The notes: generated by a model not told the origin, from the letters alone. DNA of 64,000 nucleotides from Epithemia pelagica (GCA_946965045.2 OX337231.1:1426001-1490000); one strand, 5' to 3'. Counted from the first letter of the stretch, positions 708 to 9,605 are shown. Made by a program: numbers and translations.

Positions 708-1358
708 ATGCGTATCGCAGGTTTTACCGCTGTCGCCTTGTCCTTGGGATATGCTGCGGCATTTTCCGTCCCATCCCCGGCATCAAGCTCCAAGAATGCC
801 GCGTCCGCTCTCCAAATGGGATTGTTTGACGGTTTCCTTGGACAAGGATCCGGCAAAGATCAATTGGACGAACAATGGGAAGCCCAGCAAGAGATCCTGA
901 AAACCCGACGCAAACCACGTGAAGAGCGAGATGCATACTTCCGTAAGGTTCAAGAACAGCGTATGGATGCATCGCAGAAACAGAAGGACATGTGGTCATG
1001 GCAAACCAAAAAGTATGGCAAGGGTGAAGATCCAATCAACGAATGGCGCAAACAGCGTGAAAAGGGAACCATCTCGGACCTGGACAACCAATACGGAGAC
1101 CCGAAGAAAGTTGGAGGTATTCCTCTTCCAATGGCGTCTTTTGGTGTCGGCGGAGAGTTTGGCGTTGGTGGAAAATTTGACAATGGAGGACGATTTGATC
1201 TTCGTTTGCCGTATGCGGAACAAGGATATGTTGACGATGATGCTGACGTAATGGGGAAAATGGCTTCGTTCTTTGGTGGAAACAAGAAGAAAGAGAACAA
1301 ACCTGCTCCCACAGAGGAGAAAGAACCAGAGAAGAAGAAAGGGGGCTGGCCCTGGTAA
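708..1358 (+). CDS. Plastid-targeted protein of unknown function (216 aa)
   Basis: Single ORF with hydrophobic signal peptide ending AAA-F, a Ser/Ala-rich transit peptide (…SALQM), then a charged Gly-rich mature part. Confidence 0.75.
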   Translation: MRIAGFTAVALSLGYAAAFSVPSPASSSKNAASALQMGLFDGFLGQGSGKDQLDEQWEAQQEILKTRRKPREERDAYFRKVQEQRMDASQKQKDMWSWQTKKYGKGEDPINEWRKQREKGTISDLDNQYGDPKKVGGIPLPMASFGVGGEFGVGGKFDNGGRFDLRLPYAEQGYVDDDADVMGKMASFFGGNKKKENKPAPTEEKEPEKKKGGWPW

Positions 1359-1412
1359 ATAAATTTTGACTGGGCTCCCAATTGGAAAGATGCGTTGGTG
1401 ACGGGGCAGCTA

Positions 1413-2633
1413 TCACCGTTTCCGTTTGCTTCTGGTCTGCCTCTCGTTTTTTGTAGAATCTGAGGGTATTTCTGCGGTTGATCGCTTCCGGCTCTTGGTA
1501 TTCGCTGGTTGATCAGAAGGTTTAGCACTAGACGAAGACGATGATTTGGTTTTCCAGTTTTTGTCCCGATCAAATACTAGCGTGGTATCGTCCGAGTCTT
1601 TTTCCACAAAACGGTATCCTTCGTCCTGGAAATCTCGAACTTGTTGTAAGGTCGTCGCTTGAATGCGGGCTATATAGCGTGTCATGAGTCCCCTCGCTCG
1701 TTTGGCATAAATGGTGACAACGCGGCCTTGTTCCTGGAAAATGACTTTGACAAAGGTTGCCGGAGCACCTGAGTTGGAAGGTAAAAATTGAGTGGAATCG
1801 ACAGCAGACGAGTATTCATCACTTGCCAGATTCAATAGTATACCCTTTGTGACGGATCCTTGTCCCGGGGACACGCATGTGTCAGGCTCTGCCAATTCTT
1901 CCAGTAGCTGATTCGTCACTGGCGTTCTCCAATATTCGGCAAGTTTGGTCGGTTCTTGTCCTTTCGCTAATGCCTTGGACTTGCTCTTTGTTTCATCTTT
2001 TCCATCCTTGTCAGCAAGCAAACGGAGACCTTTTGTTCCCATTTCGAGACGGTAGGGTTGGATCACATCCAAAGGACGAAGCAATCCGTAAACAGGATCG
2101 ACAATACGGAGACTCTTTTGTAGCCACTCAAACTCATCCGAATTGCAGGTCGACGCTTGCAAACCCTGATACGCTGCACCGGAAAAGCAGAGGATACATG
2201 GTTTTGCATCTTCTTCGTCTGGATCGCCATCCTCTTGGGAAGTTTTCTCCTGTGCTCCATGTTCTCCATAGTAGTCCAGATCAAATTCGTCCCAATAGGC
2301 CTTTGATTTCGATCCCAGGGCTTTGGAGATTCCCAGTAGCTTCATGAGCTCACTTTCTGTCTTGTTCTTCATGGTACGTGCAATGGTCCGTGTTTTGGAT
2401 GCATGACGACACGACAGGGGTTGGGTCGGTGTCTTGTGTGGCAACGACTTGGCCTGCGTGGTGCCAAGAGGCGACAAATCCATTGTTTTGGCCGGGGACA
2501 AAATCATCATAATCTTGCACTTCTCCTCCTCATTCTCGGCATTACTGCTGCTGCGGTCGGCCACAGATTCTCCGGAATCCTCCTCCTTGTGGCTGCGATC
2601 CTTCAATGGGACTTTGCGCCGACGAAACGACAT
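1413..2633 (-). CDS. yaaA: Peroxide-stress protein YaaA (UPF0246/DUF328)
   Basis: Family motifs ILSPAKTMD, FSGAAYQGL, YGLLRPLDVIQPYRLEMGTK, LNLASDEYS, YAKRARGLMTRY. First ATG is at 2633; basic NLS-like tails at both ends. Confidence 0.9.
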   Translation of the reverse strand: MSFRRRKVPLKDRSHKEEDSGESVADRSSSNAENEEEKCKIMMILSPAKTMDLSPLGTTQAKSLPHKTPTQPLSCRHASKTRTIARTMKNKTESELMKLLGISKALGSKSKAYWDEFDLDYYGEHGAQEKTSQEDGDPDEEDAKPCILCFSGAAYQGLQASTCNSDEFEWLQKSLRIVDPVYGLLRPLDVIQPYRLEMGTKGLRLLADKDGKDETKSKSKALAKGQEPTKLAEYWRTPVTNQLLEELAEPDTCVSPGQGSVTKGILLNLASDEYSSAVDSTQFLPSNSGAPATFVKVIFQEQGRVVTIYAKRARGLMTRYIARIQATTLQQVRDFQDEGYRFVEKDSDDTTLVFDRDKNWKTKSSSSSSAKPSDQPANTKSRKRSTAEIPSDSTKNERQTRSKRKR

Positions 2634-3043
2634 GATCAATGAGATCTTTGGTAAGGTTACGCCCCTTCAACCACGTAACGCGTACTCCTAGCATTACGCG
2701 GTAGAGGACGACTGAGTTTCGTAATGGGTAGACTACCTATGATAGGTGGCAGTACACTATAGATAGTCATAGAACCTCGACGATGAGCTCCTGCTTCCGA
2801 AGTGGAACGGATCGCTCGAAAATCTTTCCGTATCCTCGAAAACTTCCACCGGAAAGTCTTTGCGAGAAATGGTTTCGGTACGTAGTTGCAGTCATCTCAC
2901 AGCTGAAGGATTGGATTGAACTTGATTTAGTCTCCTACCAGCCTCTGGTTGTGACGGCTCTTTTTCGGCCGAACTCTCATCCCTTCCGCAGCACCGAACA
3001 AACGTGCTAACCCTGCAGCGAAGACACCCAAGAAGATCCAACA

Positions 3044-4590
3044 ATGGCGGACAAGAATCAATCCCCAGCGCAGATTGGGTCCAAACGAAACATTGAGGGT
3101 CTTGCGGCTCCTTCTCCGCGGACATTTTCGTCTCGTGGACGTCGTTTTCTGGACGCAATCCTGGTGGAACCGCAGTCGTTAGCGGCGACGCATCCTGAGC
3201 TGTGCTTCCTATTCCGAAGGATTCCCCATCCGGCGATCGGGGACACCACGGTCGATATCATCATTCGCGAAGCGGATTGGAATTTTTGGAAGGCATGCAT
3301 TGCCGAGTTGGAGGATCCCGACCCCCAGAAAATACGCAAGCGCGTGGCGGTGATCGGGTCCCCGGGGGTCGGCAAGTCAACGACGGCTCTCTTTCTCATC
3401 CGACGCCTCTTGGAGATGACGAAAACTGTCGTTTATAGAATGAAAGGAACTGCCGGGAATTATGTCATATTCAACCCTCATAATGGTAGTAACTCGCCGG
3501 TGGTGACAGAGGTACCAGGAGCCACGCCCGAGACAGGGATTCCTCCTCTCAAGAACAGGGAGACGTACTTCATTATCGACCCTGGCGTCACAACAACAAA
3601 CTGCAACCCAGATCCAAATGTCAAGGCCAAAGTTCTGATCGTTGCGTCACCTGATGAGCGTCATTGGGGTGGGAACACATTCCCTAAAGACCAGCCAGGT
3701 TGGCCGGGAGGTTTGTACTGGTATTTTCCACCCTGGTCTCTGTAAGAGCTACAGTCAGCAGGAAGCCTACTGTTGCCCCCCATCGCATCTGATCAGATTC
3801 AGCACATGTTTTCTATTTTCGGAGGAATCCCTAGACAGGTTTTCAGGCCGGCATATTCCAAACAGAATAGCAAAGTACTTAAAACGAAGGTCGAAGCTCT
3901 GTCGGAGACGCACGCAAGAAACCTTGTCTCGGGCCGCTTCAACGTTCACGCAAATTTTGGAGCAGATCAAACGCACGGTGGCATAGCAATTTTCACACCG
4001 ACTGATGATTATGAAGATTTTGTTGTATCCCTCGCGTCGGTCTCTGTTGGAAATTGGGTACGATCGTACTTTTGGGGCGCTATCTGGGCCGACCTCGCCT
4101 TGTATCTGACTCCTACTGCTTGGCAATTGCTTGAAAGCTACTCAATGGAGGCCATGATGAGGACCAACCAATACACTGCACGCCATTGTGTGGGCAAATC
4201 AGACAAACTCTATGTGCAGACCTTTGCACTGGAGTTTGGAGGTTGTACTTCAAAATCATTTCAATATGAGTGTTCGCCAGCTGTGAAGGATGGCAGCGAC
4301 AATGTGCTATTTTTCTCCTCGAATCGACAGCATCGCTGTACGACATGATCTTCAAGAGAGATTCAACATTTTACGCCATCCAAGTGACAATTGGTCGAAA
4401 CCACGATGCCACGCAGGCACAAATTGAAGAGCTCGCACAACTACTGCAGATCGGACACGGTGGACGAGAGCTGAAACTCATTTATGCCGTGCACGAAGCC
4501 CTATTTGACGGGTTTGCGACTAATATAGTGCAGCCAAAGAGTCCACCTGGGGTATCAATCTATCATTTGTCTTTGCGCCAAAGTCTATAG
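3044..4590 (+). pseudogene. Crinkler/RHS-type P-loop NTPase plus PD-(D/E)XK-like nuclease pseudogene
   Basis: Walker A VIGSPGVGKST. Conserved PPWSL[E]EL is broken by an in-frame TAA at 3743-3745, and the reading continues in the same frame (FGGIPR). A 1-nt deletion near 4334 splits H[P]LYDMIFK…YAIQVTIGRNH. Confidence 0.75.
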
Positions 4591-4799
4591 TGCACTTTAA
4601 TAAGCTGTTGGTGAAGTTACTACAACACGCATCACCAGGATGGTGTCTGTCAAGTCGCTCGGAGCAATCATACCGGTACCAGTACACACCGACACCGACA
4701 ATATTCAACCATCCGTTGTGGACTGGTTGGGCTGTTTTCGTCGCATGGTCGGGATATTCCTACTAAGGTCTACGTAAGTGAACTTCTTTACATGGCTAA

Positions 4800-5215
4800 A
4801 TCCCGTTACTGATCGATCCGAGGTCGCCCGAGCCGCATTCCATCACGTGGATTACGGAGTTCAATGAAGCGTCCGTCGAACTCGCTTTCAACAATGTGGA
4901 GGAGGAAGGGACGAAGGCGCACCCCCACATTGTGTACGTCAACCAATCATGTCCGGAACGCACCGTAAAGTTTGACGTTCAGCTGGTCCACGACATGGAG
5001 CATCCTTGTGCTCCAATGCTGGTCATCACATTCGATTGAAGGTTCCCCCGATGGACATCAACAAGTATACGATGACCGTCCCCTCCCCGATTTCCTTCAT
5101 GGCCACGTCCTCCTTTTCCAGACTCCCTGGACCGACTACTGGAAGGCAGATACCGATCATTGCTGCAGCGGCAAAATCAAGGACCATTGTGTTGACGACA
5201 AGCAATCGCAAATTG
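4800..5215 (+). pseudogene. Two unidentified protein-like fragments at the start of the mosaic
   Basis: Stop-free protein-like stretches PLLIDPRSPEPHSITWITEFNEA…VKFDVQLVHDMEH (about 4800-5000) and VYDDRPLPDFLHGHVLLFQTPWTDYWKAD (about 5020-5215), with no start context. Confidence 0.3.
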
Positions 5216-5216
5216 A

Positions 5217-5798
5217 GACGGGACGCTGGCCAACCTCTTGACAATTATGAGCCGGCACGAGGAGTTGCCACTGATTGGTTACATTCCCATGGGTTCAGGT
5301 AATGGAGTAGGATCTGTAGTGGGATGTGGTCAGTTTTCTTTCTTTCGACCGACGGCGGCGACGCGAGAAACAGTTTCTCGATGTACTAGAGGCCTTGCAC
5401 GAAATTGGTCATGCAACGAAGATCTCGACGACATTGATGTTGTGGACCTGCCCATGATACAAGTGACGTTGACGGAAATGACTTATGGTACACCCATGAA
5501 TGAGCTGTGTTTCTTTGCCGGCGTGGGCTTTGACTCGATGATGTTGGACGATTTTCGCCAGATCAAGGCGTGGTCGCGCCGAACCGGGGTCTTGAAGAAT
5601 ATCTTGTCGTCCGTGGCGGGTTATTGCGTCGCTCTCGTAGTTCGGACCCTGCCCCAAGCTGTGTTATGTGGACAGCATCTTGTGAAAGTAAAGGTCACAT
5701 CGAATGATTCCGAGTGCGTTTGGATCGATCATCGACGAGGAGATGTTATGAGAAAGTGTGGCAGTGGTACCCTATTTGAGGGCGTTACCGGTATCCTG
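5217..5798 (+). pseudogene. Internal fragment of a diacylglycerol kinase (DAGK/YegS)-family gene
   Basis: Begins mid-motif at DGTL (from GGDGT), contains GYIPMGSGNG and FFAGVGFDS, and ends abruptly at FEGVTGIL. Both termini are missing. Confidence 0.75.
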
Positions 5799-5829
5799 GA
5801 GATCCAGTGCTCAGGTCCGAGACGTATCA

Positions 5830-5975
5830 TGAGTCTGGCCTGTGGACAGATCCAAAGGCGCATACAGCGAGGGTCCATCGTCCTTGACAAGAAGTGGTTC
5901 GTAGTAGGTCTTGCGCCAAAAATCCTTCTTGGCAGGAGGTACCACTACAAGTTTATTGTCATCAGCCACACGCCC
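5830..5975 (-). pseudogene. N-terminal fragment of a DUF1349 (Ree1/ConA-like) protein
   Basis: Minus-strand translation KLVVVPPAKKDFWRKTYYEPLLVKDDGPSLY matches the DFWxxTyY motif of DUF1349; truncated shortly afterwards. Confidence 0.55.
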
Positions 5976-6124
5976 AGCTCCATCGCATCCCTCCCGGCCA
6001 CTGCCGGTGTCCCTCCAGCCATCAGATCGACAGCACCAATTGAGGAAGCCGAGGTTTCCTTGAAAGCCAAGAAATTAAAGTCTTCTCGGAACCTTCACTC
6101 ATGGTATCGCGAACTGGGGTGAAA

Positions 6125-6234
6125 TACATCGCCGGATTTGTCTTCGGCCAGGGTGCGCGTTTTACTCACCGCCAGCACGGCGATACGCACCGGCACAAAG
6201 TCGCGGGTTTCGTCTATGGCTCATTTCGTCTCCT
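6125..6234 (-). pseudogene. moaB: Bacterial moaB (Moco biosynthesis protein B) 5' fragment with Shine-Dalgarno site
   Basis: AGGAG at 6234-6230, 5-nt spacer, ATG at 6224, a frameshift, then IDETRDFVPVRIAVLAVSKTRTLAEDKSGD, which resembles the alphaproteobacterial MoaB N-terminus. Hand-counted GC is about 61% over 6121-6300. Confidence 0.75.
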
Positions 6235-6303
6235 GCAGTGCGGCCCTTCTTGGAGGCGGCACGAGTTGAGCGTCTCGCCCGAGACTGGGTGCGGCATTGA
6301 CAA

Positions 6304-6487
6304 TCTGGAAATAATCAAGCGGGTGGAAGACTTGAAAATGAGTGCAACTACGATTTTCCTCCAAGATGAAGAGAAAAGACCCATCGCTCGATCTGTTCTT
6401 CGAGAGATGCCCAACGGACACATCCGAGTTGAGGCAACCTTTGGGCTACCCAATTTTGGTAAAGAAAGTGACTCAGACCAACATTGA
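6304..6487 (+). pseudogene. Orphan 3' end of an unidentified gene
   Basis: LEIIKRVEDLKMSATTIFLQDEEKRPIARSVLREMPNGHIRVEATFGLP…stop, followed by AT-rich UTR-like DNA; no native 5' part. Confidence 0.35.
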
Positions 6488-6699
6488 CAAGAACGAGGAT
6501 TGAAAAGTATACATACGGATCCACTAAGTAATATTTAACGTTATGCTATGGTTAGGCATGAAAGTTCGAAGATAAACGGGTATCCTCGACAGAAGCGAAG
6601 ATACTATGTAATATTCTTGGCGGCAAAAGTGCTCTCCATGTGAACACTTTGTCGCGAAGAGGGATCATCACACTCCAGCAGGAGAGATCAAAAAGCAGG

Positions 6700-7797
6700 T
6701 CAATCATCGGCAACATCTAGTTCATCAGCTTGGTCATTTTCTTTCTTGTCCTTTTTCCATAGTTCAATTATGTCGCCATCCTTCATACCCAGTGCCAAAG
6801 GAGTATCTTCAGGAGAAATCACTTTACCATGAAACCTCATGCCTATGGAAGAAGATGGAATTTCGATTTGTGCGGCTGCACCTGCTAGGAGGGGCTTGAT
6901 TTTCTTGGCCTTCGCGAACAAGAAGACGTACTCTGTAGCAGATCCAGCCAAAATGGCTTTGATGGTTATTTTTTTAGGCGGTGTTCCCGGTTCTTCTTCT
7001 TGTTTCGCATTTTCAGGCGTAGTTCCACGTGTCTCTTCTGGTGTAACAGGGACCTCTTCTGTTTGGGAGTTTTGTTGCGGCGTAGCGGGTGCTTCTGTTT
7101 TGGGTTGACAACGAGCTTGAGTCGGCGAGATATGATTTAACCAGAGATCCTCGTCATACGCTTCTCCAAACTTTTCCTTTAATGCCGTTCGGGTGGCGTC
7201 ATCTCTCTGCTTTTGCTTGTTTTCATCTGCGTACAGCTCTAATTCTCGAGATCGACCGATGAAATGACCACAGAGAAAAAGGCAATCGTGAATATAATTT
7301 GTAGTGTCCAGAATGTGTTCTTGCCACATGCGGTCCACATCCACACTGCACGGATAAAATTTCTCTGTGATATCGCAATCATCATCCAAGTTCTCGGAAA
7401 CTTTGTCTTCTACAAGAGACAAGTACTGTCTGTATCCACTCAAAACACGTCTTGCGTAGGCCTCATTCCACTTGTATTTCTTCATACAGCTCATGACAAG
7501 TGGTGTGGCTCCTTGTCCTTTTCCATTCTTCAAGCAGCTGAAAAAACTGAGATCCACCATCCACCAAAAATCTCGAATCAGATACGGAGTGGTACGATGA
7601 GGCAATGAAATGTGTACACGATCGTCAGACCCGAGTTGATGATCTGCTGTTGTCGAAGAAAAGGGGTCCACCTGGATGATTGATCCCTCACTAGCATCTC
7701 CATTTGGGGTTCCAATCCGACGCCTTTTGTTCGAGTCCACCGAAACCACCGCTGCCTCGGGCTGCGGCTGGTCGTGAGAGATATCTCCCAATGACAT
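6700..7797 (-). CDS. GRDP-like (DUF1399-like) domain protein with C-terminal SUMO-like (Rad60-SLD) domain
   Basis: W…A…Y..YL.L…P..VD.MW.EH…T.NY..DC motif. The C-terminus MRFHGKVISPEDTPLALGMKDGDIIE is SUMO/ubiquitin-like. First ATG is at 7797. Confidence 0.7.
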   Translation of the reverse strand: MSLGDISHDQPQPEAAVVSVDSNKRRRIGTPNGDASEGSIIQVDPFSSTTADHQLGSDDRVHISLPHRTTPYLIRDFWWMVDLSFFSCLKNGKGQGATPLVMSCMKKYKWNEAYARRVLSGYRQYLSLVEDKVSENLDDDCDITEKFYPCSVDVDRMWQEHILDTTNYIHDCLFLCGHFIGRSRELELYADENKQKQRDDATRTALKEKFGEAYDEDLWLNHISPTQARCQPKTEAPATPQQNSQTEEVPVTPEETRGTTPENAKQEEEPGTPPKKITIKAILAGSATEYVFLFAKAKKIKPLLAGAAAQIEIPSSSIGMRFHGKVISPEDTPLALGMKDGDIIELWKKDKKENDQADELDVADD

Positions 7798-8303
7798 TTT
7801 GGTTGCTCCAACGTCCAATCTATGAGTTCCGAAAGCTCTTCCTGTACCCGTTTGTTCTCAAGGAGAATGCCGCTTTGTTGACAATGGAGGATGTCACTTG
7901 AATGAGCTGTCTGTGCAAACAGTGCGAACAGGATTTCAGATTTTTCCGCGTTGGGCGATCCAGGGAATCCAGAGTCGGCGATATGCTCCTAAGCGGTGAC
8001 GTCAAAAATAAATAGTAAAATCTTTCGGCAAGTTTTCATTCAAAAATGGGTATGGGACGCTCAGAGTGAATTGTAGTCCCCAAGCCCAAAGAGCCCATTT
8101 CGGCTCCAGCTCCAACTCCATCCCAGGGAGTGTCGCTGTTCCCAGTTCAGATCCCGGTGCAATACCATATCGCAGTCATATTGTCTATGCGCGGACAGAC
8201 GGCCGCACATAGATTATGTCACGACATGAATCTCCCACCATCGCCGCACAACCGCACACACGTCTGTATTGTGGTCGCAGTACAACTTTATTGGCGGGTC
8301 AAA

Positions 8304-9605
8304 ATGATGACAGTGCCCAAGATGAATCGGCTTCACCGCTTGTCCTTGCTATGCGCGGCAGTGATGCTTGTCGTCGTTGCAACCATGGTAGAGCCAATCC
8401 GTGCACAAGAGGAGGGGTCATCGATTCCTCCTCAAACTGGGGATAATACTGTAAAGTCGGAAGCCCCACCTGGCACTGCAAGCGACGACCAACAAGAAGA
8501 AACACCCCAAAGACCAAAGGAAGTGATTGAAGATAACTTTGATGCAAGCAATCGAAACTGGGGTTCCTATTACGACCCTAAAAATATTTTTTGTGGCGAG
8601 TATGACTGCTACAAGATTTTGGGATTCGACTATGATTCATTTGGCAAAAGCCCTCCCGACACCAAACTAATCACCAAACGCTACCGAAAGCTGTCGCGTG
8701 AATGGCATCCTGATAAATCCAAGCACAAAGATGCTAAGGAGCGATTTGTCAAGATTGCCCGTGCCTATGAAGTCCTGACAGATGTTGAAGTAAGGAAAGA
8801 GTATGACTCGATGAGGTTTAATCAAGAAGCCTACTTTGCCAAGTATGGAACATCCGTCTTGTGGTCCTACGCCCCTAAATCAGATCTTACCATGGTGGTC
8901 TTATTGATCTTCACGATAGCCAATATCGTTTCATGGTTTTCACAACAACATCGGTGGCAGATGGTGGCCAATCGTCTCATCAAGGCAGCTGTGGAGGACT
9001 GGACTACGGCACAAGGAGGAAGTCCCGAAAGTAAAGATTTAAGAGAGCGCGCTCTTTCTATCCTCTATGAGAAAAATGAGAAGAACGGAGATTCCAGCAA
9101 CGTCAACAACACGTCAACCGAATCGAACGCCAATAGCAAGAAATCGAAAAAGGAAAAGCAGAAAGGCTCCAAGAAAGTGTCTGGAAGGGAGAAAAAGAAA
9201 ATGGAAGAAGAAGCATTGTTCCCTGTAGTAAAAGCGTTGGTGAATGAAATGCATGACTTTGGGGGTGGTTTCCACAAGCCAACATGGCGTGATTTGCTGA
9301 TTGTAACCCTTGCGAAAGCTCCCTTTGGAATAACTGCTGCCGTTTTCTGGAACATGAAGTACTATATTCGACGACTCCAGAAACTGGAGCTTAATAAAGA
9401 AGAACGGCAGGTTTTGACGAAACGTGCAGTGGGTCCTGTGATTTGGGATACCAAGTCAGATGAGGAACGAGAGGAAATGATGAAACGAGACCTTTGGGTC
9501 CTCTCAAACTTGGCTGAATGGGAAGAAGAGCAAGAAGTCAAGAACCTGAGCTCTGCTGAACAAAAGCAGTACGCAAAACTGAAGAAGAAAGGTAAACTGG
9601 AGTAG
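8304..9605 (+). CDS. DNAJC25: ER-type J-domain co-chaperone, DNAJC25-like
   Basis: Signal peptide from ATG 8304; FCGEYDCYKILG…WHPDK J-domain followed by a transmembrane segment. Confidence 0.8.
   Translation: MMTVPKMNRLHRLSLLCAAVMLVVVATMVEPIRAQEEGSSIPPQTGDNTVKSEAPPGTASDDQQEETPQRPKEVIEDNFDASNRNWGSYYDPKNIFCGEYDCYKILGFDYDSFGKSPPDTKLITKRYRKLSREWHPDKSKHKDAKERFVKIARAYEVLTDVEVRKEYDSMRFNQEAYFAKYGTSVLWSYAPKSDLTMVVLLIFTIANIVSWFSQQHRWQMVANRLIKAAVEDWTTAQGGSPESKDLRERALSILYEKNEKNGDSSNVNNTSTESNANSKKSKKEKQKGSKKVSGREKKKMEEEALFPVVKALVNEMHDFGGGFHKPTWRDLLIVTLAKAPFGITAAVFWNMKYYIRRLQKLELNKEERQVLTKRAVGPVIWDTKSDEEREEMMKRDLWVLSNLAEWEEEQEVKNLSSAEQKQYAKLKKKGKLE

Follow-up and report, generated by a model that had tools for sequence, protein, structure and literature searches.

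Here we show that about 1.9 kb of DNA from the diatom Epithemia pelagica (positions 4591-6487 of the window analysed) is a genuine patchwork of broken pieces from at least five unrelated genes: an interior fragment of a repeat-borne open reading frame (ORF), the middle of a DAGK-like kinase gene, the N-terminal part of a DUF1349 gene, the start of a bacterial moaB gene, and a short piece resembling a 377-amino-acid ORF. The stretch appears to be non-functional debris left by the breakage and repair of DNA. At roughly even odds (probability about 0.5), resident neighbouring genes were trimmed by deletions and end joining, and the bacterial DNA was caught as filler.

The window, meaning the whole stretch of DNA that was analysed, comprises 64,000 nucleotides (contig 4, 1,426,001-1,490,000; GCA_946965045.2, OX337231.1) of an assembly of 60.5 Mb in 23 contigs, and the own-genome searches reported below cover all 60.5 Mb. 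The E. pelagica assembly has been described as a 60-Mb assembly at chromosome level (PMC12377750). All positions are those of the window unless a contig is named.

Anatomy of the patchwork

Six-frame reading combined with family scans resolved the approximately 1.9 kb into five identified pieces of unrelated families, lying on both strands, and further segments between and beside them:

4591-4802, no strand assigned: piece A, containing a 45-codon ORF at 4640-4777
4803-5000, plus strand: piece B, from the interior of a repeat-borne ORF family with multiple copies
5001-5216, no strand assigned: piece C, with several open frames
5217-5798, plus strand: interior fragment of a DAGK-like kinase gene, 194 codons without a stop, from DGT (of GGDGT) to GVTGIL
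5796-5807, no strand assigned: tail-to-tail junction of the DAGK and DUF1349 pieces
6074-5801, minus strand: N-terminal fragment of a DUF1349 gene, running from almost the first codon to ...EHWI and cut after EHWI
6075-6125, no strand assigned: 51-nt segment separating the N-terminus of DUF1349 from the moaB break, with an out-of-frame ATG (6103-6101) on the minus strand
6236-6126, minus strand: start of a moaB gene of alphaproteobacterial type, with a Shine-Dalgarno sequence GGAG (6233-6230), five bases, an ATG (6224-6222), and about 34 codons
6251-6340, plus strand: piece G, 30 residues like the interior (amino acids 151-180) of a 377-amino-acid ORF on contig 2

The eukaryote-type pieces (B, DAGK, DUF1349, and G) follow one another in the orientation +,+,-,+. 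A preliminary description, made by a model from the sequence alone, had proposed a mosaic of five or more unrelated gene fragments in mixed orientation, and the five identified pieces were confirmed individually. At the DNA level the stretch is single copy in the assembly, the sole exception being a 59-nt match of the DUF1349 piece (83% identity). The region carries few lesions, at much the same density throughout: two in the 1.5-kb P-loop pseudogene that lies immediately upstream, one in the DUF1349 piece, and one in the moaB piece. The view that most pieces remain stop-free in their native frame holds for the kinase piece, with its 194 open codons, and fails for DUF1349 (a 53-nt deletion) and moaB (a 2-nt deletion).

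The kinase fragment

The kinase piece corresponds to approximately residues 155-367 of diatom orthologues of 487-494 amino acids and matches DAGK_cat (PF00781) over profile positions 65-104 of 125 (E = 2e-4; 21.2 bits, below the cut-off of 23.6). It does not amount to a complete catalytic domain with GGDGT and the conserved C-terminal region. A TGA stop stands immediately 5' of DGT, and past GVTGIL the diatom homologues run on with AAGTSPFYGGG..., which the window sequence does not; the limits given in the preliminary description, from mid-GGDGT to GVTGIL on the plus strand, are thus upheld. Introns at the two ends of the piece were considered and rejected because the missing parts were found nowhere in the genome with the queries used.

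The DAGK-like family is widespread in diatoms as proteins of 450-550 amino acids (e.g. in Seminavis, Mayamaea, Cylindrotheca, Ditylum, and Discostella), and the E. pelagica piece is 45-50% identical to every orthologue sampled, with all 21 invariant alignment columns kept. When the fragment and a 330-amino-acid homologue were used as queries against the E. pelagica genome, each matched this locus alone; the conserved C-terminal 119 amino acids of the family were not found in the genome with the query used, nor was the N-terminal part found in the window or the genome with the queries used. Within the limits of these queries, the piece is therefore without a functional copy elsewhere, as is expected of a unitary pseudogene. 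The retention of the invariant columns, together with the absence of a stop in 194 codons, indicates recent loss of a working gene, and the intact diatom-wide kinase may have been lost in the E. pelagica lineage.

The DUF1349 fragment

The DUF1349 piece matches PF07081 over positions 12-47 of 179 (E = 3e-5; 24.1 bits versus a cut-off of 32.4), which is less than the full domain. It stands no closer to the two paralogues in its own genome (55% and 36% identity) than to DUF1349 proteins of other diatoms, to which it is 57-62% identical over a longer span (66-72 amino acids). Its assignment as an N-terminal piece on the minus strand is sustained. Relative to both own paralogues it carries a frameshifting internal deletion of 53 nt at about 5843-5852. 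It has no in-frame start, as a stop immediately precedes the piece and the nearest ATG is the out-of-frame one noted above. On a reading of the sequence, the 51-nt segment 6075-6125 may be the DUF1349 leader.

On contig 7 (1424951-1425178), a DUF1349-like segment was observed within an open frame of 1356 amino acids; because of this placement, the frame may encode a fusion protein.

The bacterial moaB fragment

The moaB piece was placed by its match to TIGR02667 (moaB_proteo), which covers positions 1-28 (E = 1.9e-6; 27.6 bits versus a cut-off of 222 bits for 163 positions). Since the match is confined to these positions, the piece counts as a 5' fragment rather than a gene, in agreement with the preliminary description, and MoaB chains in the PDB align over the same N-terminal residues. 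Codon 3 has lost 2 nt, and the piece has K where D is conserved in the SDTR motif. A search of 1.84 billion representative proteins gave 151 matches at E <= 1e-3; the nine that were read have MoaB-type N-termini, with the exception of one 526-amino-acid repeat protein that is not MoaB-like.

Possible donors were compared using the best 80 loci of a pattern scan over 185,579 species genomes. The closest of these belong to Rhodobacteraceae, Paracoccaceae, and Sphingomonas-type bacteria (protein identity 78-85% over 32-33 residues), and DNA identity among the same 80 loci is at most 81% over approximately 91-100 nt. In 401 sampled genomes from the order of the best-matching genome (Rhodobacterales), nothing closer than 81% DNA identity was found. 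The DNA alignment takes in the leader 5' of the ATG as well, consistent with raw bacterial DNA rather than a domesticated gene. The piece with its leader, of Rhodobacterales type, is certainly foreign to the diatom.

When the interval 4591-6700 was searched at the DNA level against 151 sampled Rhodobacterales genomes, only 6123-6238 was clearly matched; the search gave no further bacterial pieces, the four other matches being of 29-32 nt and at chance level (E = 0.003-0.007). Neither the bacterial piece nor any other piece matched Escherichia coli genomes and plasmids, making contamination from a cloning host or vector unlikely. The three MoCF_biosynth loci (PF00994) of the assembly are dissimilar to the moaB piece, and a protein search of the own genome returned the self-match only. 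An origin from the endosymbiont was rejected, as the best relatives are alphaproteobacteria.

Pieces A, B, C, and G

Two coding-like pieces had been left without identification in the preliminary description. One of them, piece B, can now be assigned to a family: it matches positions 244-306 of 539 in a profile built from five own-genome copies (hmmsearch, E = 9e-11), also with tblastn (E = 3e-6 to 1e-5), and its nearest own-genome relatives are 35-48% identical. Loci of this family share 98-99.8% identity over 2.5-3.2 kb on several chromosomes, and because such near-identical repeats occur on many chromosomes, the family is probably either a gene that has been spreading recently or an unclassified mobile element. 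Its ORFs encode 485-629 amino acids, have no Pfam match, and are found at C17:3.08 Mb, C9:2.31 Mb, C5:3.80 Mb, C2:3.07 Mb, C3:1.82 Mb, and other sites.

Pieces A and C still lack relatives. Piece A gave no match in Pfam, profile, or tblastn searches and may be the 3' trailer of the upstream P-loop pseudogene. Piece C matches itself alone in the own genome; it was considered as an N-terminal remnant of the kinase or as a continuation of the piece B family, and both were rejected for want of a significant match to the DAGK N-terminal profile or to that of the B family.

Piece G had been described as the 3' end of an orphan gene on the plus strand. The similarity itself is real, with 41-43% identity to the 377-amino-acid ORF (genome-wide E = 2.2e-5; pairwise E = 1e-9; also found by tblastx), and it concerns the interior of that ORF and not its end. 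The reading frame of piece G stays open to a stop at 6485-6487, with no further similarity past 6340. The 377-amino-acid ORF (C2:2038852-2041947, ORF 910-2043, minus strand) is the only relative of piece G found, and for this ORF family Pfam and Atlas gave neither relatives nor a name.

Junctions and ends

The DAGK and DUF1349 pieces meet tail to tail, and the junction can be read directly from the sequence: two nucleotides (5799-5800) belong to neither piece. It falls within the near-palindrome CTGGA-GA-TCCAG, a size of palindrome that occurs at chance frequency. Short foldbacks of three kinds had been cited as marking several junctions. They are present, and one coincides with this junction; their numbers in comparison with shuffled sequence and the rest of the window are those of chance (24 observed versus 22 expected, 7 versus 7-8, and 5 versus 3-5), and they were rejected as junction signatures.

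In keeping with the earlier report that terminal inverted repeats and LTRs are absent, no transposon ends were recovered, and the flanks showed no terminal repeats, inverted or direct, beyond what chance would give; their best pair is 15 nt long with 80% identity. The locus has neither the target-site duplication nor the more than one copy expected of Pack-MULEs and Helitrons. An Rfam scan of the entire 64-kb window returned no RNA family.

Genomic setting

The patchwork lies between a pseudogene and an A+T-richer spacer, with intact genes beyond them on both sides:

1413-2639, minus strand: YaaA-type gene, intact flank
3059-4587, plus strand: P-loop NTPase pseudogene (RHSP/STAND-like family), full length and with P-loop matches in Pfam
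6488-6699, no strand assigned: A+T-richer spacer (GC 0.42), preceding the intact convergent gene at 6700-7818
6700-7818, minus strand: gene with a Rad60-SLD/ubiquitin-like C-terminus, intact flank
8130-9605, plus strand: DnaJ gene, intact flank

The P-loop pseudogene is colinear with intact paralogues (open frames of 511-635 amino acids) through their last residue, and its lesions are an in-frame stop at 3743-3745 and a frameshift near 4321-4336. As this neighbour is also dead, the entire 3.4 kb constitutes a small gene graveyard. The family has at least eight paralogous loci on other chromosomes, with long open frames of 367-635 amino acids. A separately named contig in ENA (ctg1256l, 338 kb) is identical to the locus over 16 kb, probably on the basis of the same underlying reads.

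Origin of the patchwork

We infer that the genes represented here were formerly adjacent, that end joining closed the deletions among them, and that the piece of bacterial DNA served as filler. Under this reading, four genes would once have stood side by side, namely the repeat-borne ORF (+), the DAGK-like kinase (+), the DUF1349 gene (-), and a gene of the 377-amino-acid type (+), and their pieces would not be copies captured from elsewhere. Several deletions (at least four), each closed by end joining, would then have removed gene ends and spacers: one between two plus-strand genes would have produced the junction of B/C with the kinase, one spanning two convergent 3' ends the tail-to-tail DAGK/DUF1349 junction, and one spanning a divergent promoter region the head-to-head junction of DUF1349 and G. 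At the last of these, approximately 111 bp of raw alphaproteobacterial DNA would have been caught as filler or, alternatively, would be the stump of a longer bacterial insert.

Decay in place explains the missing parents, the conserved kinase residues, the retained N-terminus of DUF1349, and the dead upstream gene, and it needs no inversion for the +/+, tail-to-tail, and head-to-head junctions. Also in its favour are the small number and even spread of the lesions, the short and isolated bacterial piece with its untranslated leader, and the single-copy state of the stretch without terminal repeats. The preliminary description had favoured recent, serial capture of DNA at a break, or capture by an element not recognised as such, and proposed a search of the same genome for intact parents of each piece. 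No such parent was recovered for the four eukaryote-type pieces (none at all for DAGK; best identities of 55% for DUF1349, 41-43% for G, and 35-48% for B), and the lack of parent genes, together with this low identity to their own relatives, means that the host-like pieces are not recent copies from elsewhere in the genome. Of serial capture at a break, the origin by breaking and rejoining and the presence of foreign bacterial DNA stand; since every junction can be obtained by plain deletions between neighbours, the capture itself is possible and not required.

Several observations weigh against decay in place. It needs at least four separate deletions within about 2 kb, and five adjacent genes that were all dispensable. 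No relative with an intact gene order was found: five DAGK or DUF1349 loci of other diatoms have no neighbouring genes in common, either with this locus or among themselves, and with order not conserved at all this comparison favours neither decay in place nor capture; E. clementina is reportedly without synteny with E. pelagica (PMC12377750). Decay in place does not account for pieces A and C, and the statement that parents are not found in the own genome holds for the queries used. Finally, abutting pieces of 100-600 bp also resemble one-step mosaic insertions, and the nuclear inserts of endosymbiont DNA (NUDTs) of E. clementina are mosaics of 8-42 fragments each (PMC12377750).

The last point leads to the foremost alternative, which we hold only tentatively and regard as less probable than decay in place: a break between the P-loop and Rad60-SLD genes was repaired by end joining, and free fragments were stitched in, in random orientation, in one step or serially. 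Apart from the bacterial DNA, these fragments would derive either from a foreign diatom or from a part of the own genome that had been shattered. Short abutting pieces in mixed orientation, one 2-nt junction, at least one piece that is certainly foreign (Rhodobacterales-type moaB with its leader), and the precedent of the E. clementina inserts all favour such an event, and fragments of non-adjacent sources in mixed orientation, as in mosaic insertions, are indeed present (five families, both strands). Such insertions also have high-identity sources elsewhere, which this locus lacks: no source copy of any of the four host-like pieces was found in the genome, and the bacterial piece reaches at most 81% identity among the best 80 loci and the 401 genomes. 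Capture requires either the later loss of four parents or a single unsampled foreign diatom as source, and the kinase piece is equidistant from all sampled diatom orthologues. The stronger proposal that one repair event produced the entire 1.9 kb, joining gene pieces of E. pelagica or another diatom with phycosphere bacterial DNA of Rhodobacterales type, is likewise doubtful.

The three remaining explanations are improbable even when taken jointly. It is very unlikely that the stretch encodes working genes, one or several and possibly chimeric, with the pieces as their exons (e.g. the 294-codon ORF at 5238-6122 or the ORF at 6101-6487). The kinase piece does retain all invariant residues, and the plus-strand ORF 5238-6122 remains open for about 108 codons past it and is listed as a 291-amino-acid predicted protein on ctg1256l. 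However, this extension is DUF1349 antisense, the neighbouring pieces are frameshifted and on opposite strands, the N-terminal part of the kinase (through GG of GGDGT) and its C-terminal 119 amino acids were not found in the genome, and the protein was predicted by an ORF-style caller and not from RNA evidence. On its sequence, ORF 5238-6122 is read as a spurious chimera of a kinase fragment and DUF1349 antisense, which should not be annotated as a kinase. An assembly or library artefact, that is a chimeric molecule or a mis-join, is slightly less probable still: pieces of 100-600 bp are far below long-read length, patchworks of this kind are not produced by assembler mis-joins, the flanking sequence is unique and continuous, and the 338-kb ENA contig agrees over its 16 kb of identity, though probably from the same reads. 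Least probable of all is that the stretch is the cargo of a transposon, a Pack-MULE-like or Helitron-like carrier of gene fragments. Mixed gene fragments are typical of such elements and the piece B family is repeat-borne, but the stretch occurs once in 60.5 Mb, its best flanking repeat pair (15 nt, 80%) is not above chance, and its cargo has no parents; the lack of a second copy and of terminal repeats likewise speaks against the element that had been suggested as the agent of capture.

Relation to known systems and significance

The locus adds another case to kinds of event that are already known. It resembles insertions of mitochondrial and plastid DNA into the nucleus (NUMTs and NUPTs) and the E. 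clementina NUDT mosaics (PMC12377750) in its short fragments of non-adjacent sources, in mixed orientation and without transposon ends, in its decay, and in the presence of bacterial-type DNA within a diatom chromosome. It differs from NUDTs in that its sole bacterial piece is approximately 111 bp long, below the 500-bp cut-off of that study, and is alphaproteobacterial, whereas NUDTs derive from the cyanobacterial endosymbiont; in that its other pieces are eukaryote-type genes without a surviving source copy; and in its donor identity (at most 81% for the sampled donors versus 98.4% for NUDTs) (PMC12377750).

With unitary pseudogenes and other cases of deletional decay in compact genomes it shares the absence of an intact copy elsewhere, truncations, frameshifts, and an upstream neighbour that is itself a pseudogene, although here four or five adjacent genes are present as abutting stumps within 1.9 kb, with foreign filler. 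The short foreign fragment exactly between two truncated genes, and junctions that are blunt or of 2 nt, are as in end-joining filler DNA; the filler in this case comes from a bacterium of free-living type, and the event is known here from its sequence alone. Pack-MULE and Helitron carriers are similar patchworks of unrelated gene fragments, from which the locus differs in having no terminal repeats, target-site duplication, second copy, or parent genes.

Diatoms contain unusually many genes of bacterial origin. To our knowledge, the step by which bacterial DNA enters diatoms has rarely been seen. At this locus, raw bacterial DNA with its ribosome-binding site lies between truncated host genes, which ties the uptake of foreign DNA to break repair. 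Were the whole stretch the product of a single repair event, it would be a footprint of environmental bacterial DNA entering diatom chromosomes as end-joining filler, before selection. In addition, E. pelagica appears from this locus to have lost a DAGK-like kinase that is kept in several other diatom genera. Its interest is moderate and lies mainly in its being a footprint that joins the entry of foreign DNA with break repair in a diatom.

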